64,000 bases of DNA from Cyanophora paradoxa CCMP329 (taxonomy: Eukaryota; Plantae; Glaucophyta). The position numbers and the translations under genes are program-made. The DNA lies in contig QPMI01000210.1 in assembly GCA_004431415.1 (NCBI GenBank), positions 1 through 64,000 on the forward strand, in the 5' to 3' direction. This document shows positions 41,673 through 59,321 of the stretch, piece by piece. Below the pieces are notes generated by a model that searched no databases, was not told where the DNA came from, and saw nothing but the letters and a program-made list of their open reading frames with translations. The stretch's first letter is position 1; each line of letters starts with the position of its first letter.

Positions 41673-42345
41673 AGGCCCCGCCCCGCCCCGTCGCCCCCGC
41701 CGCCCCGCCGGCCCGCCCCGCCCCAGAAGCAACCTGGGGCGCGGTGGCCCCCGCCCCCTCCCCGCCCGCCCCCGCCGCCCGCGCGGCCACATCCCTTTCC
41801 CTCATCCAACATGACATCGCCCCCGCTTCGATGGCTGGCTCGCTGCCGACGCCTGGGCTTGACATAACAGCCGCCACGCAAGCTCAGCGCTAGCGACTGT
41901 CCAGAGATCTAGAGCCGTCGCGATCAGCATGTACAGAACATGCACGAGCTCGAGTTCAGCTGTACATGTCACGGTACGGTAAGGATCTCGTCGACGTCGG
42001 GACTAGCTAGCGCTTCAGGAGGAGAAGGAGAGCTTTAATTTAGAAGCGCAGTCGTCGGACGCTCGGCGTCGGCGCGCGCGGCGCATCAATTGCAAGCATT
42101 GCCAAGCAAGCTGAGGGGGGTACGTCTCTTCGGCATCAGGCCGCTATCGGACATTATAATTACGACGCTGTGATATACGTACAGTCTCTCCGGGCGTGGC
42201 ATTGTCAGATGGCTCGGTGAGCACTCTCAGGCGTGCCCTCAGGCGAGCGGCTACCGGTTCGTGCGGTCATCCGCGCGCCCGTAATCAGCGCGTGTTCCCT
42301 GCTGACATCCATGACGCCGGCGCGTTGCCTCGCATCGGCTAGCAG

Positions 42346-44218
42346 ATGACACGCGATCAAGCCCCCGCCCGCGCGGTGCTGGTGTGCGCGCCGGGCTTCG
42401 AGGAAGATGGTCGGGCACTGCGGGAGGCGCTGCGCGACCCCGGGTGCTGCGGCTATGCCGAACAAGACGTAAATCTCCTCACGGACGACATCGCGACGTC
42501 CGTACGTCTCCCCCGTAGCTCCTGCTGCGGCTCGCGAGCTTCAGACTGATTTCCATACGGATGCTCGCTCAGGGCGGCCTGCTCTCTGTCCTCGCCGAGA
42601 TCGCTTCGGCAATGCAGGCACCGGACGCGGGCGCCCCCGCCGACTCGTCTGGGCCCCAGCAGCCGGGCTCGTTCCTCTTCTACTTCGCGGGCCCCAGCAC
42701 GCCGCAGCCCGAGCCCAGCCTCAGCCTGAGCGGAGGCGCGCGTCTGACCTGCAGAGATCTCCTGTCGGCTCTCGGAGGAATCAGGAAGAGCGTACGTGCA
42801 TGCGCAGCGCCCTGGGCTCCGCTTCGGTTTGATCCGCGCGTGCGCAGACGAACCGCTTCCTCCTCATCCTCGACACCTGGTGCGCGTCTCTTGAGCTCCC
42901 ATCATGGCATCGCCCAAAAGCTGACTACAAAAACCGTGCAGCTTTTCAGGCGCCGTCGGGGCGCCGCCGGGATTCAAGGCGAAGGGCCCGAGCCCGGCCT
43001 GCTGCAGCCCCGTCGACGCTTTTGGAGACCTGTTCGCCAGCGACCCCGCCGCTCGCGGCGCGGGGCACACTTCGGTGCGCCCCGAAGCCTCCTAAATAGC
43101 CGCTCTTCTCTGACGGGGGCGCTGCAGTGGCTCTCCGTGCGGCCGAATCGGGGCTCCAGCGGCGGCCCAGGAATCTTCGCAAAGCACCTGGCCGCCGGCC
43201 TCCGCGGTGGGATGAAATGCGCTGACCCGCCGGCGGCCGGCGGCTGCAGGACGTGCGCGGACCTGCGATACGTCTCCCAGGTGGGCGTGCCACCTTTCCG
43301 CGTGCGTCCTCCGAGCTGATCTGCCCCAGACGGACGGCCTCGTGCGCATCTCGGCGCTCTTCCGGCACATCCAGTCGCACGTGAGGGCGGAGTCGTCTCG
43401 CTCCGGTCGACCGCAGCAGCTGCTTCAGTTCCAGCACGCCGTCGACGAGGACCTTCCCCTCGCTTTCCTCCCCGGCTGGGCGCCGGTCCACGCGGCCCCG
43501 CCGCCCTCACCCGCCGTCGTCGTGTACCCCGCCCTTCCGCCCCACGCCCTCCACCAGCACATCGTTCCGGTGGGGGCGGGTTTCGGCGGAACCTCCTATG
43601 GCTACCACCCCCACGGGCCTTCTACCCACTACCCGCTCCCCCCTCCGCCTCCCGCTACCCCACGACCGGTCACGGTGTCTCTGACTGCACCAAGCGCCGA
43701 CAATCCCTCCGCCGGCGAAGCGAGCCTGCCGGCCGACGCAACGGCAACGGCGGCGGCGGTAGCAGCGAGCAAGCCGGCGGGCGCGGAAGCAGCGGCGAGC
43801 AAGGCGGCGGGCGGGGCAGTGGAACCGGAGGCGAGCAAGCAGGCGGGCGCGACGGCGGCGGCGGCGGTGGCGAGCAAGCCGACTGGCGCGGAAGCAGCGG
43901 CGAGCAAGCCAGCAGGCGCAACGACGGCGGCGGCCGCTGGCGAGCCGACTGGTGCGGGGTTGGCGGCGGCTGTGGCGGCGGCGAGCAAGCCGGCGGGTGC
44001 GACGACGGCGGCGGCCGCTGGCAAGCCGACTGGTGCGGGGTTGGCGGCGGCTGTGGCGGCGGCGGGCAAAGCGGTGGGCGCGGCAGTGGACCCGGAGGCG
44101 AGCAAGCCGGCGGGCGTGACGGCGGCAGCGGCGGCGGCGGCGGCGGCGGCAATCAAGCCGGCGGGCGTGGCAGTGGATCCGGAGCCGAGCAAGCCGGCGG
44201 GCGCAACGGGGGCGGCGG

Positions 44219-44259
<41 letters not shown>

Positions 44260-47200
44260 GCAGTCCGATCGGTGCGGGGGTGGCGGCAGCGGTGGCGACG
44301 AGCAAGCCGACTGGCGCGGCGGTAGCGGCGGTGGCGAGCAAGTCGGCCGGCGCGACGAAAGCGGCGGCGGCAGGCAAGCCGACCGGTGCAAGTGCGGCAA
44401 TGGCGGCGGCGGCGAGCAAGCCAGCTGGCTCGGAAGCAGCGGCGGGCAAGCCGGCAGGCACGGCGGCGGTGGTTGCGGCGGCAAGCAAGCCGACCGGTGA
44501 GAAGTCGATCGTGGCGGCGGCGAGCAAGCCGGCTAGCGAGGTAGCAGCGGGGGCGAGCAAGCCGGCGGGCGCGACAGTGGAGACGAGCAAGCCCACCAGC
44601 CGCACAATTAGAGTTGCTCAGGCGGTAAGGCCAGATTCTGATTGCCCTGCTGCAGCAAGCAGACCCAGACCCGCTCAATCTCGGGACGTCAGCTTGCGGG
44701 TGCGCAATAAACTAGAGCTCTTCAATTCAATCTGACCGACGTGCGCGATGCAGGCGACGATCTGCAGCTGGGACGTCCAGCACCTCGCCGAGTCCAGCGT
44801 GTACGAGTCGGGGCTTAATGTTGGGACGCCCCTGCCCAAGCGCTACGAGAGCGCTAGCGACTTCTACGACCGCCTCGCGCCGCTGGTGCTGGAGACGTGC
44901 CGCGCGCAGCTCATCCAGGCCATCTGCTCTGTCTCTCCAGCCTCGGCCGTCCCGTTCTCCTTCACGAGCCTTTCGGCCGACGAGAGCTACGCCCCGCTCA
45001 GCGCGGTTGGGGTCACGCTCCGGGCCTGCCCCGAGGACACTCTGGCGCTCGTGGGCAGCACGGTCTGGGTCTTCTGCCCGCAGCCCTTCGCTGGCGCCGA
45101 CCACTTCGCGGCGACTGGCGATGGCGGCGGCGCCCGTCGCCCCGCCTGCACGCTGGCGGTGCTCAATGGGAAACGCCGTGCGGAGGATGGCCCACGGGCG
45201 GACGAGCTCGACGAAGAGCCGTTTGACGCCGACCAGAGCTTCCACATTCTTCCCGGCGCGAACGCAGAGCTCACGGAGGCACGCGTGTGTTCTGCATCCT
45301 CTCTTATCAACCCGCTGATTGCACTTCGCAGGCGCTTGCCATGCTCCAGGCCTGCGCAGGCAACGCGCCCTGGTTCGCGACGCCCCTCGGGACGGTTATC
45401 ACTGAGGAGCGCATCCTTGCCGCTCTCGCGGCGCTCGGCCGCCGGGACTCGCCTGTCTCCCGCTGCCGCCTCCTCCTCCCGCTCCTCCAGTCGTCCCTGG
45501 ACGACGAAAGGCATATCACCGTGCCGAAAGACCTCGCGGGCACGGTCGGAGGCGCGGCGGCGCTTGCCAGCGTCGGCCAGCAGCTGGAATCGTCCCTGCG
45601 GGCGATCCTCGACCTCCTCAAACGAGCGGCGGGCCTCAACGTCTCGCAGGTGGCCGCCATCGAGGACGTTCTCTTCGGCTCGGACCCCGCCACCCTCATC
45701 CACGGGTAGCCTTCTCACTCCTTCTGCTAGTTGTTCTCACGTCTTCTGCTGATTGTCTGGCACAGGCCACCCGGCACGGGCAAGACGCAGACACTGGCAG
45801 TGTACCTTCTGACCGTCCTTGCAGCATCGCGGGCTTTTGGCATGCGCCCTTCTGCGATGGATTCAGCAAATTCGGCGGCGAATTCAGAGGAGGTGGGAGC
45901 GGCCCGGAAACCTCCGCGCATGCGCGTGCTGGTCACGGCCCCTACCAATGCGGCCGTGGTTAACGTTGCCAGAAAGCTTCTGAAAGTGAGCAAAGTGAGA
46001 AGCTTCTCTTCTTTGTCGGAACTGAGGTCTCGAAGGTGGGCGCCATTGTCGCGAGGGGGCTGCTTGCCTCCGAAGAAGGCAGAGCCTTCGCTTCGGCTGT
46101 GGCGCTGGATGAGTCGGCGCTCGCCATCGTTGGCGACGAGGGGCGGATGGTCGGCTTCGCTCACCGCACTGCGCCTTTCAATTGCAAACGTCTGCGCAGG
46201 AACTCAACGAGGCACTCTCGTCGATCTTTGTCCCGCATCGCGCCAGGCGCATTCTGCTCGCCGCGGCAGAGTGGAACGAAGTCTTCAGCGACGCGGCGAG
46301 GCGGACGGCGAGGGGCTTGGCGGCGCAGCCCCCGGGCTTCGAGCGCCACGTGGACCGCGGAAAGCTGGTCGAGCTTCTCGCCAAGCTTGTGAGCGACAAC
46401 GAAGCCCGCGTGGCGACGCTGGAAAGGGACATGCCCGCGGGAGTGGAGAAGGGCCAGAGCTGTGTTGCAGCCGCCCGCAGCGCGTTGGAGACCCTCGTGA
46501 CTCGAAAGGTGCGGCTTCCACTAGGAGTCAGTCGCGAGATTTATGCCAGCATGAGCAGACGGAGCTGGAAACTGGCGGCGCGGATCCTCTTTCAAACAAC
46601 GAATATGCGGTCGTGGCGAGAGCGCTGGAGGCGGCGGCGGGCGCCCTCAAAGGCCTCGAACGCATCGACCGGACCTCGCTAGAGCGCGCAATCGTGCGAG
46701 AGGCGTGCGTCGTCTTCTCGACGATCACGGGCGCGCAAGGTTTCTTCCTGCGCAACGACGACGGATTCTCCGTCGCGGTCGTTGATGAGGCGGCTCAGGT
46801 GCGCTGGTAACTTCCTGTTCGAGATGCATCTGATCTGGAGCGATTTACAGGCACCGGAGGCGTTGACATCGCTTGTCTTCCGGCGCTCGCTGCAGTCCCT
46901 TGTCCTGATCGGAGACCCGCGCCAGCTGCAGGCCACTATTTCGTCCAAGGTCTGCTCGCTCGCCGTTCTAGACCCCTCGAAATGACAAAGCTGCGAGTGC
47001 AGTCCGCCGAGGCCTGCGGCTACGGACGCTCCCTGTTTGAGCGCCTCGAGGAGTGTGGCGTGGGCACGTGGCTCCTGGACACGCAGTACCGGTGAGCTGC
47101 TTCTGTGAACAGCCGCAAACATTCTGGTTTGACTTGCTAGGCTGACACGTGCCTGCAGAATGCATGAGGAGATTGCGCTGTTCCCTAACTTTCATTTTTA

Positions 47201-50200
47201 CGGTAATTTGCTGAAGCACGCCGAGGGCGTCAGCATCGCTCAGCCCTGGCACGAGGATGAAGTGCGTGTACCCGCGCTCAGTTGCAACGCCTCGCTTACA
47301 ATCCTTCGAAAGGTTGGGCTGTTCCCACCCCTCTGCTTCATTGACGTGCGCGTGGGGGCGGAACGAACGGTCACCGTCAACGGCGCCCCCAGCTACCTCA
47401 ACGACGCTCAGGTAGTTTCTGACTTCGATCCGATCCATCCGATCCATGTTTCCTTTATCAAGCTCATCGCGTGCGCAGATCGAAGTGGTGGCGTACCTCT
47501 GCCAGCGTTTTGCGAAGAAATACGCGTCCCTGGGTGCCGGAGATGAGCAGGACGGGGGTGGGCGGAAGCTGTCGATCCGCGCGCGGATCGGCATCATCTC
47601 GCCGTACAGAGCGCAGGTGGAGGCCATTGAGGTGAGCGCTGCTTCCGCGACCGATGCAGCGCCCTCTCATCGCTTCTGCGCGCACAGGCAGCGTTGTCCG
47701 GCGAGTCCGCCGAAGAGCGCAGCTGGAAGTCCAAGGTGCAAAAGCGGCGCGAGCGACTGATTCAGATCGCATCTGGGAAGGCGCTCGTCGAGGTCAAGAC
47801 TGTGGACGGGTTCCAGGCGCGCGCGTCTCGGTCGTTCATAAGACTCGCCACCTCTGCATAACTGGTGGAATCATGCAGGGTGGCGAGAAGGACGTCATCA
47901 TCCTCTCGCTTGTCCGATCCAACCGCAATGTCGGCTTCTTGGAGGTCGCCAGTCGCCTCAACGTCGCAATCACTCGCGCGAAACATAGCCTCGTCATTGT
48001 CGGGCATGGTGCAACGCTCCGGATGGACGAGGACTGGAATGCCCTGCTCGAGAGCATTGAGCAGCGCGCCGCAGCCTGCCAGTCGTCCGCGCGCCCAACA
48101 GTGCGGTACGTCAACGCAAGCGAGCACAAGCAGCTGCTTCGGCGCATCCAGGGGGAAATGGGCGAGAAGCGACTTCGAGAGCTGCGGGCGGCGGTGCTGC
48201 ACCTTGGAGAGAACACGAGCCGACCAGGAACCCATTCGAAGTGGCGGATGAACATGACCGCAGAGGCTTTTCAGGCGTTCTCGGTGCGCCGCGCTGAATC
48301 AAAACGGTAGACCTCCACGTTCACGTCGCCTCTTAGGAGCTGGAGGACAGGGAGCGCCAGGCGATTGCGGAGTGCGCTCTTAAGCTTGCGGAGGGCAAAC
48401 GGAGCCGCAGCGCAAAGATGCGCTCTCCGCTCGTTGACGTCGATGTTGGCTTTTTCGTGGAGGATTCGACTTCGACTGCGACAGCGGGCGGAGTGCAGAT
48501 GAAGCACCCGCTCGAGCTGTACCCCATCAAGGTCCGACAGCGAAGTATTGCTTTCTCTTTTTCTTTTTGCACCCGTCATCGGTGAGCAGGTCGAGAGCAT
48601 CTTAGAGTTCCGGGTTTTCTGGGGATTCGCGTGGGTCCATCTCCAGGACAAGCCGAGCGTCGAGCAGGTGCGATCGATTGAGCGTATCGAAGATCGGCGC
48701 GCTCGAGCCCAATCTGTTCGCAGTGCATCAAGATATACGGCATCGTGAAGGTGGACCAGACGAACGAGGCGACGCTCGTGCTGGAGGCTCGGGAGCGGCT
48801 GGCGAGGGAGGTCGTCGGCATGTACTCGGACGAATACCTCCAGGGCTGCCGCCTGACCGACCGGGATCTCATGGCGGGCCCCCGCTGCGTACCCGTCGCG
48901 GACTTCGCCTGGTACAGCCTTTGTCTGTTTGGTGCTGGTGCTGCATCTCACGTGCATCTCACATGCGATCAGGTACCGCAAGGGAATGGCCGAGAAGCCG
49001 GGTGGGGAGGGCGAGTGCCACGCGGATATCGCCAAGTCGCTTGAGGTGGACCTGAAAGCTGTCATCATCGCCTGTGAAACAGCACCGAGCGCTTTCTCGA
49101 CAGGTGCCGGCCGAGGTGCTGCGGCGCGTGGTGGAGGGTGGCGAGCTCCGCAAGTCGGTCGTCCCGCTCATGGCTCTCTCGCCGGAGGAGATGGCAATCG
49201 TCCAGCAACCGGGCAGCATTTTCGTCCTCGGCCGTGGCGGCTCCGGCAAGACGACCGTTCTGCTCACCCGGATGGTGGCCAACGAGATGCGGCGGCGGAT
49301 GATGGGCGCCGACTGGAGACAGATGCTCATCACGGCCAACCCGCGTCTCTGTGGCGAGCTCCGCGCCGAGCTGCAGAAGATGTTCAACACGCTGCCCTTG
49401 GCGTCCACCGACGCGGCGGCGCCTCCCGCCGTAAGAAAATTCTGCCAATTCATCAGCGACTCCTTTCTTAACCTGAGGACAGAACGGGCGCGAAGTTGCA
49501 GCGGATCGCAGCCTCAGCGACTGCAGGAGTCTCGAAGTGTGCACCTTCGAGCAATTCCTCGCCCTCCTCGACCGCGATTTACAGAAGCCTTTCTTCCGAA
49601 AACAGGCGCTGCCATAGCTTGCTGCTTTCAGCGCCGCTTCCTCTGCTGACAGGCTCTGTCTGCAGGACTGCTTGAATCGACGGGTCGACTACCGTCTCTT
49701 CCGCACCGTGTACTACGACTCGTTCCCGGAGCCGCTGCGGCGCAAGAAAGACCCGCGCCTCCTCTTCTCAGAGTTTCTATCCCTCATTAAAGGATCGGAG
49801 GTCCGCCTTGAACCTGGCGTCACTCAAGCTTGGCACATCGCGGGCTTATGTCATCGCAGGACGCCATCCTGGGGCGGTTCACGGAAGGCAGGGCCGCGCC
49901 CGTGCCGCGGCAGCCATTCGTTGCGGACCCTGAAAGTTCTGAGTGGGCAAATTCGGAGTACGCGTGGCGCAGCGCCTTCTCCGACGCGAGGACACGAAAT
50001 GAGGTGCCAAGACCTTCGCCTGATCATTTTTGCCTTTGCATGACCTTTGTGGCGAAGGTGTACGATCTGTTCGAGGCGTACGAGGAAGCGAAGCGGCGGC
50101 GGGGCGAGCACGACGTCGCGGACGTCGTCCTGCACGCGTTCGCAGAGCTCCGCGCTGGCCGTGTCCGCTTCAACTACGCGCCCCTCCACTTCGCCATGGT

Positions 50201-53200
50201 TGACGAGGTGCTGTCGCTCCTAACCGCATTTTGGGCGCTATCATTGACTTCTTTACCAACAACTACAACAACTGCAGGTTCAGGACCTCAGCATTGCTCA
50301 GGTCGCTCTCTTCAGCTTTGTGTGCTGCAACAAGGACGGCTTCGCCCTCGCTGGCGACACAGCGCAGACCATCGCCCAAGGTTCCGGCTTCCGCTTTGAA
50401 GGTTCGCGCGAATGTATTCAATATCTGGTATCTGGCCGAGCAGCTGCGCTGCGCTTTGCAGACGTCAAATCGTTCTTTTACAAGCACGCCATCTACCTTT
50501 TCGGCGAACGCACGGATCCGGACTCGAAGGTGTGTCTGCACGTCTCACATGATGATGATGCCCCACATGATGACGAGTGCAGGTGCACGTACCACCGGTC
50601 TGCCTGCTGCAGCGGAACTTCCGCACGCACACGGGTGTCCTCAATCTCTCAAACTCCATTGTGTTTCTGCTCCAGGTCCGCGTTCACGCCTGTTTGTTCC
50701 ACTGCTCTTGCCTGCCTTTTCACACGCTTCGTTACCTAGAAACTTTTTCCAAACGCTGTTGGTAAGACGGTGGTCGTCCCACGCACGCAAACGATTGAAT
50801 TAAGCCGCAGATGGTGTCGAGATGGAGGAAGCACTCAAGCACGGGCCGCTGCCGATCGTTGTCCGCAGCCCGCAGCTCACCGACGCCAGTTTCGCGGGCC
50901 TCCTATCCCAGAAGGACTGGACCGCTAACCAGGCGCGGCACCTACGTTGAATCCCGCGTATGCCGCCGTAACCGGCTCTTGCAGGCGGTCCTGTTGCGGG
51001 AGTGCGCGCAGGGAGGCGGGCGAGGAGCGGAGCGAGGCGTTGTTGCTCACAGCATTCGAGGCGAAGGGCTTCGAGTTCCAGGACGTTGTCCTCTACAGTG
51101 CGCATTCTAACTAAGCTCTTCTAGATCTGATCGCCATTCTAAGTAAGCTCAGATTTTGTGTCCGGATCGCCTTTTGCAAAGCTCTTCAACGTCCTCTCGC
51201 GCATTGCAGACGGTTCCTTCTCATTCACCCACGACTTCGAGCCCGAACTGCTCCGGTACGGACCGCTCTGCCACGAGCTTAAGATCCTCTACGTCGCGGT
51301 CACGCGGACCAAGGGCCAGGTCTGAAAAATTTCAGCCATTATGTATCTTCGCCATTCCGGACGATTGTTGCGCAGCTTGTCTTTTTCGAGGATGGCAATG
51401 CGGCGGAGCCGTTCGAGCGCCTCTGGCAAGCGTCACAGCACTGCAAGGAGAGCGGCGCCGACGGAGGCGGTCAGCTAGTGCATGCAACGAAGAATGTTCA
51501 GGAGGGTCTGGACGCACTATCTTTCGCTGGTCTGGCAAAAACGACGAGCCGGGAGGAGTGGCGGAAACGGGGCATGTAAGTCACAGCACTGCTTCGACGA
51601 TTTGTGTCCATGTACCCTAAACATCATCCGCAGGCAATGCATGGAGTTGCAGCAGTACGAGAACGCGAGGACCTGCTTCCGGAACGCGCGGGACGAGCGA
51701 GGTCTCCAATGGGTCAAGGCGGAGATGGACCACGAGCGCGGCTTGCGCGAAGCAGGTATGTATGGAGCTCGCTGTATGCTGCACGCTTCTCATTCGGACG
51801 GCAGCAATGGTGGGCAATGGTGCATCGGACGCAAAGACGATCGAGAGGGGTGTCGAGCTTCTGTCGGGCGCTGCGGAGCAGCTGTTAGCGCTCTCGCCAC
51901 CGATGGCGGAGCGCGCCTCCGAGTGGTGTGTGGAGGCGGTTCAGCTGGCGAGGGGGCCCCGCGCCGGTTCCAGCAACGGCAGCTCAAAGGCGGCGGCGGC
52001 AGCAGCGGAACGCCGCGCGAAAGACGTCGCGCGGCGGGTTGCAAAGATGTTGGAGGGCCACGGAAGACATTCGGATGCAGGGCGCGTGCTGGTTGATGCT
52101 GGATTGCAGGTCAAGTCTTCGGCGGAGAGCGGCGATGACAGAGCAGAGAGCCTGAAGCGGGCCCTTGACGCATGCTTGCAGGTCCGTCGCTTGCGTGGTA
52201 TGCACTTTTCATCTTCAGCGCAATATTCAATCCTGCTGCAGCGCCGGGAGTTCAAACGAGTGCTGACGATTTTGGAATCCAATACGGTGCGAGTTCATCA
52301 GTTTGATCGTGGGATTCGTACTTATTCAGCGTGCAGGCGGATCAGATCGCACCGGAGACGCTCTCTAAAGTCCTGCTGGAGTGCGCACGGCGCGTGAAGC
52401 GGGAGGAGGCCCTGCCGTTCCTGAAGCTCCTGCCCTTGCTCGACGAGCGCGCCAAGCAACTTGAGGCATACCGATTCTTTAAGGAGCTCATCGATTTGGA
52501 GAAGGAGCGAGGTGACTATGAGCGCGCCGCTCGAATACAGCAGTGTCTTGGAGACTTCCTAGGCGCAGCTGCCTCCTGTCGGTCCGTTCATCCTTCTCTA
52601 ACTTGATTTGCCGTCGCCTTCTCTCGCCTTGGCTTATGTGTTTGCGCAGTCTGGATGGTAATCACATGAGCGCCCTTTACTGCACCCTTTTCTACGCGAG
52701 TGCTCATGTCGAGTTCAACGGGCGGCCTGTCGAAGGAGCCATACCCCTTCTCCGTGAGGTCTTGGAGATAGCGAACGAAGATCTACGAATAGTCCGGGAG
52801 GAGAGTGCACGATGGAGCACCGAGGAACAGGACTCGATACGCGACCTGGCCATGGGGCTCGAATATCTGCGAGCCGTCGTCGACGACGTCAAGGACGCTT
52901 GCACATGGATCGAAATTGCGGGTCGCACAAGGCGACCCGATGTCATTTTGCCCTGCAGAATGCGTGCCTGCGATTGCATCATTTCTACAAGCGCCTTTCA
53001 CGCTTTGGCAAGTGAAATAGTACTAATGACTCTGAAGATTCTGGACGCCGCTCCTGGTGCACTTTCCGAGTTTTTCCCTTGCTCTGACATTCACCGTCTT
53101 TTTGGAGTCGACATTTCTGCCTCCTCCATTCTCCACTATGCACCGCAGCCATTCCCCCAGAGCGACTCGGTACCGCCGAAGGGGAAGAAACTTGGAAAGG

Positions 53201-55341
53201 GCGGGGCACCCCCGGCACCGCCCCAGCCTGCAGCCGCACGGCGGCAAGCCTTGCCTTTAGCCGTCTCATCACTCGATATGTCGGAAGATCGAAAGTCGTG
53301 GATTGCTGCTGTAACACTACGGATTTTGAATGCTGCCGCCGATATCGCGGTGCCCTGGTCGCTCGTGCTTAAGAAAGGAGAGCGTCCCAAGGAAGCAGCC
53401 GAGGTGCTCTTCAGCCGAGGTCCCCCGGTCAGTCACAGACATCTGGCCCTTGTCGCCTGCGCGGAGGTTCGTTTTAAACCGGCACTGCTATCAACGTCCG
53501 GCCTGCCTCAGTCCTAAAAGATGCCTCAGTCAGGTAACTTCGATCAAGGCGAAGAGTTTGTCAGCCGTGATCCGCAGCTGAAGTCGAAATGGCGCGTGCA
53601 ATAGCATGAACGTTTTCTGAAATTATTCTGACGTTTCTTCAAGGGCGGAGATATTGAACAGAGCCGCGGAGTTCTTTTCTCAAGTCAATTTCGTTCTGAT
53701 CTATTGTTTTACATTCGTTCACATCGCTTGCAGAAAGATCAAGAACCACGCAAATTGTTGGACATGCTGCAATCTAACGCGGCAAATGTCTTTGCTCGCT
53801 TACTCTTCGCTCATTTTCGCTCAACTCAGGGTCTGAGCGCGCAGAGAATATCCACGAAGACGCGCTCTAGAGTCCTGCTGGAGTGTGCACGGCGCGTGAA
53901 GCGGGAGGAGGCCCTGCCGTTCCTGAAGCTCCTGCCCTTGCTCGACGAGCGCGCCAAGCAACTTGAGGCATATGGATTCTTTAAGGAGCTCATCGATTTG
54001 GAGAGGGGGCGAAACAACCACAATGCTGCGGCTTGGTGTCAGCTCGGCATGGGGGATCTTCTTGGCGCGGCTGCCTCCTTCCGGTTTGCTAGCACTCCTT
54101 CCATGTTCTGGTTCCGCGCGTGAATGACCTTCCTTCATCGATTCTTCCAGGCTGACCGGCAAACCCGCCCACATCGAAGCCCTCAGCTGCATGCTCGATT
54201 ATGCATGTGCTCACATCGAGCTTGATGGGCGGCCACTGGAGGGGACCGCGCTCCTGCTCCACGAAATTTTAGAAATGGCAGGCGACGACTTGCGAGTTCT
54301 GGACCTGGAGGTCACGACTGATCAGGTGCGGGTGATAACAGAGTGCTAATGGCACATGAACACATCTTCTCCGCAGGTCCTTGACCTGAAGCGACTGGAG
54401 GAGCTGTCCCTGCAGCTTCAGTTCGTTCGAGCTGTCACGAACGATGTTAAGGACGCTGAGACGTGGATTGGCCTCGTCAAGCGCACCGCGAATCCTCCTT
54501 ATAATAATCGTCGACCTGATATCCGCATGGCCTGTGAACTGCGCGTTTGTGATGCCCTTTTATCTACAGCTCCACTTCATCCCGATGCCTTCAATGCATC
54601 GTTGACCACTCTAGAATTGCTACAAACGATGCCCAGCATACTACCTAAGCTCGCCAGCGATTTAATGGCTGACCGATCACTCTCTCTTGGCGCTTTCGCA
54701 CTCTACACGGGCCATTTCTCTGCGTCGCAGGCCTCCACTAGTACTGGAAGACGTCTCGTGTGGTTTAGAGGAGGGAAGCCACTGCAGCCGGATTCAAGCC
54801 AGAGCAAGGACCCCGCGGAGCCCTTGCAGCAGCTGCGTCACGCCATGCCTCTTCTCGCCAACATCTTCAATAGCCCGGCGTCGTGGGCCGCTTCGATGTC
54901 GCCAAAGTTTACGAAGGCGGCTGCAGAGCTCGCGCAGCGCGCGGCGGATGCGCTGGTGGAGGCGAAGCGCCCTCGAGAAGCAGCGCAGCTGCTCTTCGCT
55001 GCCGGCGATGAGCAGCGCGCCACGCTCATTTGTGCTAACGTGCGTCACTGCGATGTCCCGATGTGCACACCATGGAATTTTACCGCCCCTGTCTCGTCTG
55101 CAGGAGGGCCCCGCCGTCGTCAAGGAGTTGAGAAGTCGCTATTTATCCAAGAAGCAAATTGTTACAAGGTAACCTGCACGTACGAGCTGCGAAGCACTAG
55201 CTGATATAGTGCAGCAGCTCTTCTTCCAGCTTGCCTATGATGAGGAGAATAGGAGACAGATGGGTGCGCTTGTAGTCAGCTCACACGTCCAGACGCATCT
55301 CACCTCCGCGACGTGTATGCACATGCACAGGAGCTCTCTGA
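42346..55341 (+). CDS. Giant multidomain protein: caspase-like (Peptidase C14) - Ala-rich repeats - Upf1/Sen1-like SF1 helicase - TRANK1/UvrD-like helicase - duplicated helical repeats (two apparent frameshifts; ends uncertain)
   Basis: Caspase-like: FLFYFAGP, ILDTCFSG. Helicase 1: IHGPPGTGKT, VTAPTNAAV, VVDEAAQ, IGDPRQL, SLFERL, LDTQYRMH, IISPYRAQV, TVDGFQGGEKD, RLNVAITRAK. Helicase 2: GRGGSGKTT, VDEVQDL, AGDTAQTI, LQRNFRTH, EAKGFEFQDV, ELKILYVAVTRTK. Confidence 0.85.
43740..44600 (+). repeat. Coding minisatellite, about 22 degenerate A-S-K-P-A-G units with poly-Ala spacers
   Basis: Recurrent GCGAGCAAGCCGGCGGGCGCG, and a GCG run at 44212-44258. Confidence 0.9.
52369..54004 (+). repeat. Internal tandem duplication (period about 1.5 kb) with a near-identical 134-bp core
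   Basis: 52369-52502 and 53871-54004 both encode VLLECARRVKREEALPFLKLLPLLDERAKQLEAY.FFKELIDLE and differ at about 3 nt. Confidence 0.92.
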
Positions 55342-55519
55342 TCTGCAGTCGGATGATCCGGAGCTCCCGCCTTTCGAATTCAGGTACGCCATACAGTGGC
55401 AAAGACAGCCAATCTGATGGAGCAGCAGCAGCCAATCTGTCCCAATGGTCAAGCACGTCGGCGGAACCTGGGTGCGTCTGGGTGCGTCCGTCTTTTCCCA
55501 AACCAACGCCTTTTTGCAG

Positions 55520-56838
55520 GAGCCGGTGCCATCCACGAGCGTTTCGGCATCGATGAAGGCACCAGTCGACCGTTCTTCGATGCCTGTGTTGGGTGGAGGC
55601 GCAGCGTCCTCCTCAGCACAATTGCAAGGAGCTCCTTCAGCGTTGTCATCGATGTCGGAAATCGTTCCGGCAGCACCGAGCCGGTGAGCTGCATGGGTTC
55701 CCGTTGCAAATATCAAATATCCATACCGAATACAAGCTGCAGTGAGAAAAGCAGCGGCCGAAAACTGGATCTAACGCAAGGTGGGAGGCGGAAGTGGCCG
55801 GTAGAGGAGATTCAGAAAATGGGTCCCGCGAGCGTTCGCATACTTTTGCTCAACACCAACAAACTCACGAGCGTCCCTGGCGCGGAACTAGCGAAGCTCG
55901 TGAAGCTCAAGTCGCTTTGGCTGGACAGAAACGAGCTGACGACGCTCCCGGCGGAAATCGGGTCCCTGTCGAACCTGCAGCAGCTTGTTGTGAGCAACAA
56001 CCGTCTGAAATTGCTGCCGCCGGAAGTGGAACGCCTGGAGAACTTGCAGCAGCTGGACTTGCACAAGAACGAGCTTTCGGCGCTTCCGCCGGAGATCTGC
56101 AGCCTTCCAAAACTCCAACAGCTGGACGTTCGCCAGAATCGACTGACGACACTGCCACCTCAAATCCGTCATCTCTGGCTTCTCCGGGACTTAAAGCTGA
56201 GCGAAAACAAGCTTGCGACCCTGCCTGCAGAGCTCGGGCAGCTTTCGAATCTGCGTGATCTACACGTAAGCAAGAACCAGCTGACTGTTCTACCGGCGGA
56301 GCTCGGTCAGCTCGCGAACCTGCGAGAGTTGAACGTCTGGGAGAACCGGCTGAAGGCGCTGCCCCCGGAGCTAGGGCACCTTGTGAACCTTCAGCAGCTG
56401 GATGTCAGTTGCAACAAGTTGATGGCGCTTCCGCCAGAGCTCGGAAACCTTACGAATCTGACCGTGCTGGACTTGAGCAAGAACCAGCTGCAGGCACTGC
56501 CTCCGGAGCTCGGCCTGCTGTCGAGCCTGCAGCGCCTAGATGCGAGCACCAACAGGCTGGCTTCTCTTCCGTCGCAACTTGGTCAACTTGCGAACCTGGA
56601 GGACTGCAACTTGTTCAAGAACCAGCTGAGGACTTTGCCGCCGGAACTGGAGCGACTCACGAACCTGGAGCGTTTAGAAGTCGGCTGCAACAGGTTGAAC
56701 ATGGACTCGTTGCCACCAGGGCTTGGCCGGCCGCGCCTGGAGCAGGGATTCATCTACAACAATACGGATCAAGTAAGTTCGCTAGCGCACCATGTTATTC
56801 ACGTGTCACAGTGTAGCAAATACTTGCGCAGCCGATGA
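55520..56838 (+). CDS. Leucine-rich repeat region (23-aa SHOC2-like repeats); separate gene or C-terminus of the giant helicase gene
   Basis: About 12-13 LxxLxLxxNxLxxLPxELGxLxN repeats in one uninterrupted exon of about 1 kb. Confidence 0.88.
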
Positions 56839-59321
56839 TGATTCGCAACGATTCATCTCAGGTGAGTTCTACGAATTTTGCACGCGGTGCAATCCTCGTG
56901 ATCATGATTCGCGTGCAGCCGATGACGTTTACCGTGTTGCCTAATTATAAACGATAGAGGTCCCGCGCCCTTCGCTCATGGATGCGATATTAAGAGTCTC
57001 GGAGACTCAAGACTGTCGGACTGGGGCACCCCCCAATCTCGCCCCCTTCGAGCTTTCGTGTATACGTAGCTTTCTGTTGCGGATTCTGAGTCCGGTTTAA
57101 TTTGTGTGTCCCCGTGCACGTGCTCCTCCGATCCTCCTTCACCCTGGAACATGTACACCGGGTCTAGGTTGAAGGACTTGTGCATGTGCAGAAGGGCAGG
57201 CCGAACAAGGGCCGGGGCTAGGGCGGGGCCGAGGTGGAGGACCGGAAGAGGTTGGTGGAAGGGGGCGAGGATCCGGAGGGGGCGGGGGGAGGGGATTCTC
57301 GGTCGGGGAGGGGGAGGTGGGGGAGGGGGGCGCCGGCCAGGGTAGGAGCAATGGAAAGGACATCGGGACAGCGCAAGGAATTCGAAAACGGGGAGGGGAG
57401 GGGAGACTTGATAAGAGTTGCTGTCTGGGTCTTCCGCGGCCGGATCCTCGGTTGCAATTGACCATGCCTTCGCGATCGCTCCAGCGAAGTCCTTTAATTT
57501 CTTCCCTCCAAGGCTTCTAGCTATAGGCTACTTGCACCTGGCCCATCCCCCTCGAACCGCTTGCACCTGAACCGCAGGGGGATCCCCCGTCGACTGTCCC
57601 CTCGAGCTCCCCGGGCTCGCCTCCCTAATATTTAATCATCATGGCATAAGACCCCATGGCCATCGCGGTCGGCAGCACAAATTATGCTCACGTATACGTA
57701 TAGCCTGATTTAATTAACTAGTATACGTAAGCCGAATGCTCAGACCGAGTGCAGCCGCAGCTGGGAACCGAAGTTCTAGAACCGAAAGGGAACCGGGCCG
57801 GGAACCGGTCGTGGGGCCCCCCGCTCACGATCGCGATCGGCAACGGCGCCGCGGCCGGGACCGCCGCCGTCTCGAGCTCGCCCCCGTCATCGTCATCGTC
57901 GATTTCCGATCGCGATGTTGGACCGGCGTGGACCTCGGGCGTGAGGGGAGGACGACGGCCCAGCTTCAGCTGCAGGCGGCGGCAGAGCCCGCGACGTACC
58001 TTCGCGCCCTGCGCTCGCGCACCCCTCAGACTCGAAATCGAGCCTCGAAGAGCGTGCCGGCGCCCGGCGGCCGTGGATCGAGCAGCTGCAACACGACGGA
58101 GCGCCAGGCGTAGAGGGGCGTAGACGCCCGGAAGAAGGAGCAGCGGGAGAGCACGACGCGCAGTGGGCGCCCCTCGAGCTCCGCCCGCGCCGTCGCGATG
58201 AAGTCCTCTGCAAGGCGATAAGGAGGAGAAGAGGAAAGGAGGGAAAGCGCAAGCCAAGCGAACTGACGAGGATTGTCTTCCCGTTCCCGGCCTCCGCCTC
58301 AACGATCAGTACCCCCCCGCCCTTGGCGGCCAGCTCGGATCCGGAGGGGTCGCGCGGGGGACACGCGGCGGATCGGAGGCGGCCAGCGAGTTGTGCTTAA
58401 GCTTGAGGAGGGTGTCCAAGAGCTGCGCGAAGAAGCGGCACTCGTAGCTGTAGGCGCGGCCCACGAGCTGCCCTCGTTCGCAGATCCCTCCTCGTACGAG
58501 ATCGTCTCCGTCGCCCCGCGATCGCGACTGGCCTGGCCCCCCGACGGCGACGGCCCCCGGCTCCGCTCCCCCAGGGGGACAGCTCCGGCGAAAACGAGCT
58601 GGCGGCCCCGGCCTCGTTCGCCGCGCCGCCGCCGCCGTTGCCGCCGCCCTCGGCGCCCGACGAGGACTGCCCCACATGCATGGGCCAGCGATCGCGAGTC
58701 GACGTGCCGCCGCATAGAAGAGGCCCGGCTCATGATCAGCGTTCGCTTGAGGTTCGCCGAGTTGGAGTTGGATCGGGGCATCTTCCCGCTCTACGCGTAC
58801 GAGCGCGGGAGCCCGCGGCTCGGAGACTCGACGTCGGAGGGCGGCGCCGCCTCGAGCCCTTGAGCGCCATCTCGCCGTCCTGTGCGACGTGCCGCCAAGG
58901 GTCGGTCGGGACGAACGAAGGAGGATATCGATGGGCGAAGCGGGTGGGGTACCGGTGCAGATCTAGAGCCACGGACCTGTTCCATCTGAACGCGGGAGGA
59001 GAGGCAGCTGCGCATGCGGGTCGCCTCGTCCACCAGGACCTCCCCACTCGGCGCCTTTAAAATTTTGCTGCGGGGCGGGATCGATATCGAACCCTCACGC
59101 GTCGCCGTCGATCCGGCGGGGAGAAACGGGAGCGGACCATGGCCATATGCATGATGCGGGCGCCGGCGGCAAAGTTGACCACCGCTCCGAGCACTGCGTA
59201 TATACGTACTCGCAGCGCGAGTGGACGTCGCCGATGATCATGAGAGAGCAGACGGCCCGCCCTGTCGTGACCGAGATCTGTGGCGGGGATATCGGTACAA
59301 GTAATTATAAGCGGATGATGC

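Follow-up and report, generated by a model that had tools for sequence, protein, structure and literature searches.

Does a single gene of the glaucophyte Cyanophora paradoxa encode a caspase-like domain, two different helicases and a leucine-rich repeat (LRR) tail in one protein? The question is raised by a stretch of 64,000 nucleotides (nt) of strain CCMP329 (GenBank assembly GCA_004431415.1, contig QPMI01000210.1, positions 1 to 64,000), hereafter called the window, in which a preliminary description made from the letters alone had proposed such a fusion. We find that the part running from an Upf1-like helicase through a UvrD-like helicase and a duplicated helical module to 13-14 LRRs is a single expressed, spliced and polyadenylated gene. 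On balance, and with moderate confidence, we read the locus as one very large nuclear gene in which this part is preceded by a caspase-fold head and a linker. Read in this way, the gene spans ~14.8 kb and comprises at least 50 exons separated by introns of 45-71 nt. The protein counted from the annotated ATG at 44400 has at least 3,200 amino acids (aa), while a product starting at 42346, with head and linker included, would reach ~3,800 aa.

The published annotation provides the model tig00000889_g5304.t1 (P0003, 2,059 aa), whose peptides match the window exactly at 44400-52698, exon by exon and with no stop. A paralogue elsewhere in the genome is represented by tig00000219_g19466.t1 (P0007, 1,795 aa) and by the neighbouring model g19465 (P0002). 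These three database models were used as spliced stand-ins and the window exons were searched one by one, whereas exon chains of the window were joined in silico only for frame and stop checks.

RNA evidence from the helicases to the LRRs

Seven runs contain sampled words of positions 46900-56890, with a word share of 63% as expected of spliced RNA, and contigs of four runs (X1, X5, X8 and X12, from four studies) could be placed on 51400-57390. The 3' contigs of X1 (2,607 nt), X5 (2,600 nt) and X12 (2,643 nt) each join, on their own, position 53943 to position 57121 through 10 GT-AG joints (Table 1). That of X12 terminates in an A run followed by adapter sequence, which together with the spliced-out introns indicates that these contigs derive from RNA. 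The joints of the five small exons leading into the LRRs (55104-55683) are seen in X1, X5 and X12, and most of them in X8 too. Along the RNA-joined exon chain, a scripted check found a single frame open from 52441 to the TAG at 56955-56957.

The preliminary description had traced a path into the LRRs through the peptides PFEF, SQSVPMVKHVGGTW, EPVP...PS and REKSSG, and these are exactly the joints of the RNA contigs in three to four studies, with the frame open. Its intron of ~29 nt near 55264 is in fact 67 nt long in the RNA (55264-55330), and its gene end at 56838 was placed too early: the intron 56773-56831 is spliced out, two more small exons follow, and the stop lies 119 nt beyond. The LRR exon itself is recognised by Pfam with high significance (LRR_8, E=2.5e-45, 152.5 bits over 7 stretches; LRR_4, E=1.3e-36) as LxxLxLxxN-type repeats with a period of 23 aa. 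No second LRR region was found elsewhere in the window using the LRR protein as query.

Upstream of the 3' contigs, a second contig covers 52441-52581 and 52650-53466, then three small exons, and continues from 53845 to 53916. A third contig holds 51801-52176, in one piece, near its 3' end; in X1 it measures 6,221 nt, with 5,717 nt of mRNA upstream of this exon, and in X5 it measures 5,502 nt, with 4,998 nt upstream. The contigs break at 52.42-52.44 kb and at 53.92-53.94 kb, in both cases inside a patch of 158 nt in which the two copies of the helical module agree to 95%, a near-identical duplication at which a k-mer assembler must stop. Continuity of the gene across both breaks is carried by the colinearity of the genome and by the open frame. 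The three contigs have similar depth in X1 and X5. In X12, by contrast, the 3' contig is ~9x deeper than the middle contig, a point that speaks against one gene and could reflect 3' bias or an internal promoter or start.

Two SF1 helicases of the TRANK1-like family

Pfam recognises both halves of a superfamily 1 (SF1) helicase of the Upf1-like SF1B type in the first motor, with AAA_11 at P0003 377-727 (E=3.4e-35, 122.5 bits) and AAA_12 at P0003 734-961 (E=2.8e-52, 177.6 bits), and both domains are also matched by raw stretches of the window. The second motor, of the SF1A type, is matched by UvrD-helicase at P0003 1444-1533 (E=1.9e-13, 51.2 bits for a cut-off of 23) and by AAA_19 at P0003 1267-1536 (E=1.8e-10, 41.5 bits). 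Motifs I, Ia, II, III, IV, V and VI are all intact in helicase 1; in helicase 2, motifs I, II, III, IV and VI are present in P0003, and motif V is found in the window exon 51028-51097. Thus the earlier reading that both helicases keep the Walker A and B motifs as well as the later SF1 motifs holds. The region between the two motors (P0003 962-1266) matches no known domain in Pfam.

A search for relatives with residues 100-1800 of P0003 as query returned 82 proteins of 1,132-3,603 aa at E<=1e-10. The set consists of the paralogue of Cyanophora, of numerous proteins from land plants (2,000-3,100 aa), some of them named TPR and ankyrin repeat-containing protein 1, and of Jimgerdemannia (Mucoromycota) sequence, followed by weaker matches such as UvrD-only fungal proteins, ZGRF1, HELZ2 and ZNFX1. 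As in the window gene, the TRANK1-like plant and fungal tandem helicases combine AAA_11/AAA_12 with a downstream UvrD-like helicase in a single protein. They match P0003 with 24-29% identity over 56-100% of the query, and for many plant proteins the coverage is 60-100% and the E-values range from 1e-85 to 1e-120. The occurrence of such tandem proteins in plants, which the preliminary description had named, is borne out by these land-plant members. Most of the plant proteins also contain DUF6469 (PF20073), a domain that is absent from the matches of P0003 and P0007. Furthermore, Upf1-like proteins such as ZNFX1, HELZ2, MOV10, UPF1 and MkoA belong to the same SF1B family (AAA_11/AAA_12) as helicase 1 but lack a second UvrD-like motor, a caspase-like head and LRRs, so that their kinship is at the superfamily level only. 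In PADLOC, helicase 1 is nearest to MkoA of Mokosh (E=4.4e-61) and helicase 2 to GajB of Gabija (E=1e-8), likenesses that, as judged from sequence, are also of superfamily rank.

The preliminary description knew of no caspase or LRR additions to such proteins, and none was found in the relatives examined here: Peptidase_C14, caspase, CHAT or LRR domains are listed for none of the 82 relatives, and the N-termini of ten further relatives gave no caspase match with the profile that detects the head of the paralogue. Literature searches likewise returned no description of a protein combining a caspase with tandem helicases. The core of the gene belongs to the TRANK1-like tandem-helicase family, to which this lineage has added the head, the helical modules and the LRR tail; the helicase family is known, but its combination with these domains is new.

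The duplicated helical module

Positions 52337-55039 encode two diverged copies of one module of ~430-500 aa each, with 30-46% protein identity. When the largest helical exon was used as query against 1.84 billion representative proteins, two matches were obtained, both from Cyanophora paradoxa (EukProt); in that collection no relative of the module was detected outside Cyanophora, and it has no Pfam or NCBIfam match nor any match in the TRANK1-like plant and fungal tandem helicases. An AlphaFold2 (AF2) model of copy 1, built from a four-row alignment, is all-alpha and confident only for the first 110 aa, where the predicted local distance difference test (pLDDT) score is 71-90. Foldseek comparison of this model with the PDB gave nothing at E<=0.001, and weak rows of TPR or alpha-solenoid-like proteins only.

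Two details of this region deserve mention. The patch at 53855-54012 (158 nt) is 95% identical to 52353-52510 despite the otherwise diverged module copies, which probably results from recent gene conversion. The intron 53592-53643 is of the GC-AG type, as backed by contigs of four runs, the other introns being GT-AG and 45-68 nt long.

A caspase-like head with an altered catalytic dyad

The borders of the head exons were obtained with a splice model trained on RNA-supported introns and checked against the paralogue. The predicted six-exon chain contains 528 codons with no stop and five canonical introns of 49-71 nt, and is colinear with residues 1-306 of P0007; 43116-43274, for instance, shows 53% identity to it. 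At the cysteine site, the sequence ILDTCFSG keeps the Cys of the paralogue (LVLDTCFAG), its codon being split TG/C over a predicted intron (42878-42879 and 42942). At the histidine site, the window copy reads FYFAGPS, with a Pro (CCC, 42693-42695) in place of the His found in the paralogue (FYFSGHS).

The assignment of the fold comes from the homology of the head to P0007 and from the profile matches of P0007 itself. The paralogue head (residues 1-320) matches the NCBIfam model caspase_w_EACC1 with E=2.3e-6 and 27 bits, for a family cut-off of 140, and its best Pfam match is Peptidase_C14 (E=0.0079, 16.3 bits for a threshold of 21.4). Moreover, the Atlas (language-model) neighbours of exons 1 and 2, searched separately, are Peptidase_C14 clusters, with scores of 0.90 and 0.89, respectively. 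Two observations count against this assignment, namely that the caspase match remains below the Pfam threshold, and that the single-sequence AF2 model of the paralogue head is poor (pLDDT 42), though with the expected order of strands and helices. Pfam searches with single head exons and raw stop-free stretches gave no caspase match, and a sequence search of the PDB with exon 2 and the paralogue head gave chance matches only. Taken together, the head probably adopts a caspase fold that lacks the catalytic His in the window copy.

The EACC1-associated caspase (NCBIfam NF047832; Kaur et al. 2020, PMC7159879), which is the best profile match of the paralogue head (residues 28-148), far below the family cut-off, is a bacterial protein fused to variable domains in a conflict system. 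The Cyanophora gene differs from it in that no EACC1 partner is known and that the window copy has no catalytic His. The paper that defines this system (PMC7159879) makes no mention of such fusions, of TRANK1 or of glaucophytes. According to a 2025 preprint, linked protease-effector modules of prokaryotic defence, EACC1 included, are activated by proteolysis (10.1101/2025.11.14.688446).

Resemblance to immune receptors and possible role

The preliminary description saw in this locus an effector-NTPase-sensor layout. The order of the domains is real and its helicase-to-LRR part is one transcript; the effector end is less secure, with a head devoid of its catalytic His and a change of frame behind it (see below), and the NTPase is of another kind. 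Nucleotide-binding LRR receptors (NLRs) and other signal transduction ATPases with numerous domains (STAND) share the same three-part logic of an N-terminal effector-type domain, a central NTPase and C-terminal repeats (LRR), but possess a NACHT or NB-ARC domain where the window gene has two SF1 helicases. Against Pfam, only sub-threshold P-loop matches to STAND NTPases were found (nSTAND_NTPase5, 17-18 bits for a cut-off of 34). The gene is therefore not an NLR, although it is laid out like one.

We propose that the product may act as a cytosolic surveillance ATPase, in which the two SF1 motors would engage RNA or DNA while the helical modules and the LRRs would bind a ligand or a partner. 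With Pro in place of His, the head of the window copy is predicted to be unable to cleave. Inactive caspase homologues regulate active ones, and owing to this replacement the dead head might likewise work through regulation or pairing, the intact-dyad head of the paralogue being one possible partner. A nucleic-acid-sensing role in defence is suggested by analogy with helicases of the ZNFX1, Mokosh MkoA and Gabija GajB type.

The most serious alternative is that the protein is a housekeeping factor, a TRANK1-like tandem helicase with a function in DNA repair, transcription termination or RNA surveillance, whose LRRs and helical modules would be no more than scaffolds for protein-protein contacts. 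We consider it unlikely, yet it deserves real weight: members of the core family occur widely among plants and fungi and have no known immune function, a point that, for the plant tandem helicases, also tells against the defence proposal, the similarity to MkoA and GajB is of superfamily level, and the gene is expressed in all runs examined, with no reported challenge. It accounts less well for three features typical of conflict genes: the lineage-specific paralogues with differing C-termini, the internal module duplication with its gene-conversion patch, and the head of caspase fold, to which a profile from a bacterial conflict system lies closest.

The proposal of a surveillance ATPase can be extended further, in a form that we regard as doubtful. 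Glaucophytes might possess a small helicase-based family of NLR-like receptors, in which tandem SF1 helicases sense foreign RNA or DNA, swappable C-terminal modules tune recognition, and the caspase head executes proteolytic signalling. Two partners, the window gene with its dead head and LRR tail and the paralogue with its live dyad but no LRRs, would then work together as sensor and executor, much like paired NLRs or cFLIP with caspase-8.

Should the fusion prove both real and functional, Cyanophora would supply a eukaryotic example, from a group that branched off among the earliest in the plant lineage, of nucleic-acid motors standing in for the STAND ATPase that separates effector-type head and repeat sensor. 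The TRANK1-like tandem helicases, which occur in plants, fungi and animals and are poorly understood, would thereby gain a link to surveillance or defence that can be tested. Furthermore, the two paralogues differ in their tails, and only one of them has a live caspase dyad, which makes them a natural experiment.

Probable continuity of the head with the helicases

The paralogue provides the closest comparison. Its models g19466 and g19465 share with the window gene the order caspase-like head, Upf1-like helicase, UvrD-like helicase and helical module, with identities of 40-67% in the head, 45-66% in the helicases and 30-46% in the module. In P0007 the head is joined to helicase 1 via ~30 aa within one gene model, and the neighbouring g19465 continues with helicase 2 and the helical module. 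Unlike the window gene, the paralogue keeps the His-Cys dyad, has a linker of ~30 rather than ~400 aa and a single module copy, and the final 530 aa of its model are helical and contain no LRRs. No public contig matched the paralogue model in an exact look-up.

The in-frame intron at 44700-44753 (between SLR and ATICSW), by which the preliminary description had linked the caspase part to helicase 1, is real, the same junction being used by P0003. The unbroken frame that this link implied was not found, as the linker of ~1.2 kb upstream of the intron changes frame. The motif KP[AT]G occurs 8x in frame 0 (43700-44215), 6x in frame 2 (44261-44699) and in no other frame. Within this linker, positions 43750-44573 form an imperfect tandem array coding for KP[AT]G-type repeats, an expansion specific to the window copy.

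The RNA contigs help to place the 5' end of the transcript. Between 44754 and 51800, the mRNA measures 5,150-5,300 nt according to the published model and to a splice model, the latter reproducing the observed word share of 0.63. Given this length, the 6,221-nt contig of X1 begins ~417-567 nt upstream of 44754, with a computed start at ~44133-44283; this lies in the linker, at the triplet tract, and precedes the annotated ATG at 44400. A strict upper bound on the exon length of 44754-51800 was considered and discarded as useless, spurious open frames being long at such a guanine-cytosine (GC) content.

Several findings weigh against one continuous gene, and they gather in the linker and at the head. 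The switch from frame 0 to frame 2 falls within 44216-44260, at a run of four G (44216-44219) followed by ~13 GCG triplets; frame 0 meets a stop at 44323, and the published annotation begins g5304 at the ATG at 44400. No intron that could mend the frame was accepted, as the sole candidates are 257-422 nt long with weak sites. A word search with 43330-43695, covering the end of the head and the start of the linker, found no database model of 203-645 aa. Lastly, the loss of the His could mean that the head is decaying.

These findings could be explained by two genes, one encoding the caspase-like domain with an Ala-rich tail ending at 44323 and the other a helicase-helicase-helical-LRR protein starting at the ATG at 44400, the fusion being confined to the paralogue or to an ancestor. 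Such an arrangement would fit the frame change with its stop, the want of a credible intron across it, the start of P0003 at 44400, and an RNA coverage of this analysis that reaches no further 5' than ~44130. We nevertheless hold it to be rather unlikely. In the paralogue, a single model contains the direct fusion; the KP[AT]G repeat goes on in the new frame; the RNA contig starts no less than 117 nt before position 44400, and frame 2 is open there; and the 77 nt from the stop to the ATG offer no space for a terminator and a promoter. Moreover, a one-base error in a G run beside (GCG)13 is a common assembly fault. The simplest reading of the frame change is thus a 1-nt homopolymer error of the assembly, or else a very recent frameshift.

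A head decaying after the duplication, through loss of the His, expansion of the linker and a true frameshift, so that only a helicase-LRR protein is made from an internal start and the caspase exons may be silent or may survive in the mRNA as a long 5' leader, would agree with the Pro at the His site, the frame change and a repeat-expanded linker absent from the paralogue, but is very unlikely given the six predicted exons with 528 codons free of stops and five introns with canonical sites, the retained Cys motif, and a divergence from the paralogue that is no greater in the head than in the helicases.

We therefore favour continuity of the head with the helicases, on account of the direct fusion in the paralogue, the reach of the X1 contig and the 77-nt gap between stop and ATG: the caspase-fold head is probably part of the same gene.

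Gene structure, annotation and composition

The coordinates of all features are collected in Table 1. By means of the RNA contigs, the 3' structure of the gene is corrected where the published Cyanophora annotation fragments the locus.

Table 1. Features of the locus, from 5' to 3' (positions in the window).
Feature	Position	Strand	Basis or remark
Predicted exon 1, with start ATG, first strand and helix of the caspase-like domain	42346-42501	+	67% identical to P0007 18-62
Predicted exon 2 of the caspase-like domain	42573-42791	+	aligned to P0007 63-132; borders from splice model and paralogue
Predicted exons 3 and 4	42848-42879, 42942-43074	+	62-nt intron between; cysteine-site motif
Predicted exons 5 and 6, C-terminal half of the caspase-like domain	43128-43280, 43330 onward (to 43480)	+	colinear with P0007 201-306
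Linker of ~400 aa, Pro-rich then Ala-rich, KP[AT]G repeats	43481-44699	+	tandem units of 30-111 nt
In-frame GT-AG intron of 54 nt	44700-44753	+	junction also in P0003
N-terminal accessory region of helicase 1	44754-45634	+	P0003 101-376; 53% identical to P0007 336-506
Upf1-like (SF1B) helicase core	45635-48007	+	~12 exons; motifs I-VI intact
Inter-helicase region	48008-49208	+	P0003 962-1266
UvrD/TRANK1-like (SF1A) helicase	49209-51400	+	motifs I-VI; ~59% identical to paralogue P0002
Alpha-helical region after helicase 2	51401-52336	+	homologous to P0002 447-589
Helical module copy 1	52337-52581, 52650-53466	+	RNA joints
Small exons between module copies	53530-53591, 53644-53683, 53734-53787	+	RNA joints
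Helical module copy 2	53845-54083, 54151-54325, 54377-55039	+	RNA joints
RNA-joined exons of the 3' contig	53943-54083, 54151-54325, 54377-55039, 55104-55168, 55215-55263, 55331-55383	+	contigs X1, X5, X12
RNA-joined exons of the 3' contig (continued)	55429-55471, 55520-55683, 55743-56772, 56832-56861, 56919-57121	+	contigs X1, X5, X12
Ser-rich linker into the LRRs, five exons	55104-55168, 55215-55263, 55331-55383, 55429-55471, 55520-55683	+	RNA joints
LRR exon	55743-56772	+	13-14 repeats of 23 aa; Pfam and RNA contigs
Last two exons, with TAG at 56955-56957, 3' untranslated region and polyA site near 57121	56832-56861, 56919 onward	+	RNA contigs

In the published annotation, the locus is split into g5304 and g5305, the latter (P0001, 201 aa) being identical to exons at 53764-54535, and no model was found for the LRR fusion. 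The end of g5304 at 52698 is wrong, as it lies inside an exon that the RNA shows to be continuous to 53466, and the same model skips part of the exon that holds motif V of helicase 2 (51028-51097).

The window has a GC content of 55-80%, with very short GT-AG introns. Within 42000-58000, GC content falls along the gene from 69-74% at the 5' end to 55-59% at the 3' end, the flanks being at 70-80%. GC content at third codon positions is 0.77-0.86 at the 5' end and declines gradually to 0.59-0.73 towards the 3' end, a trend that weakly fits a single transcription unit.

Finally, one relative of helicase 1 derived from Logan (P0079, 2,139 aa) carries an RNA-dependent RNA polymerase domain (PF05183) beside AAA_11/AAA_12.

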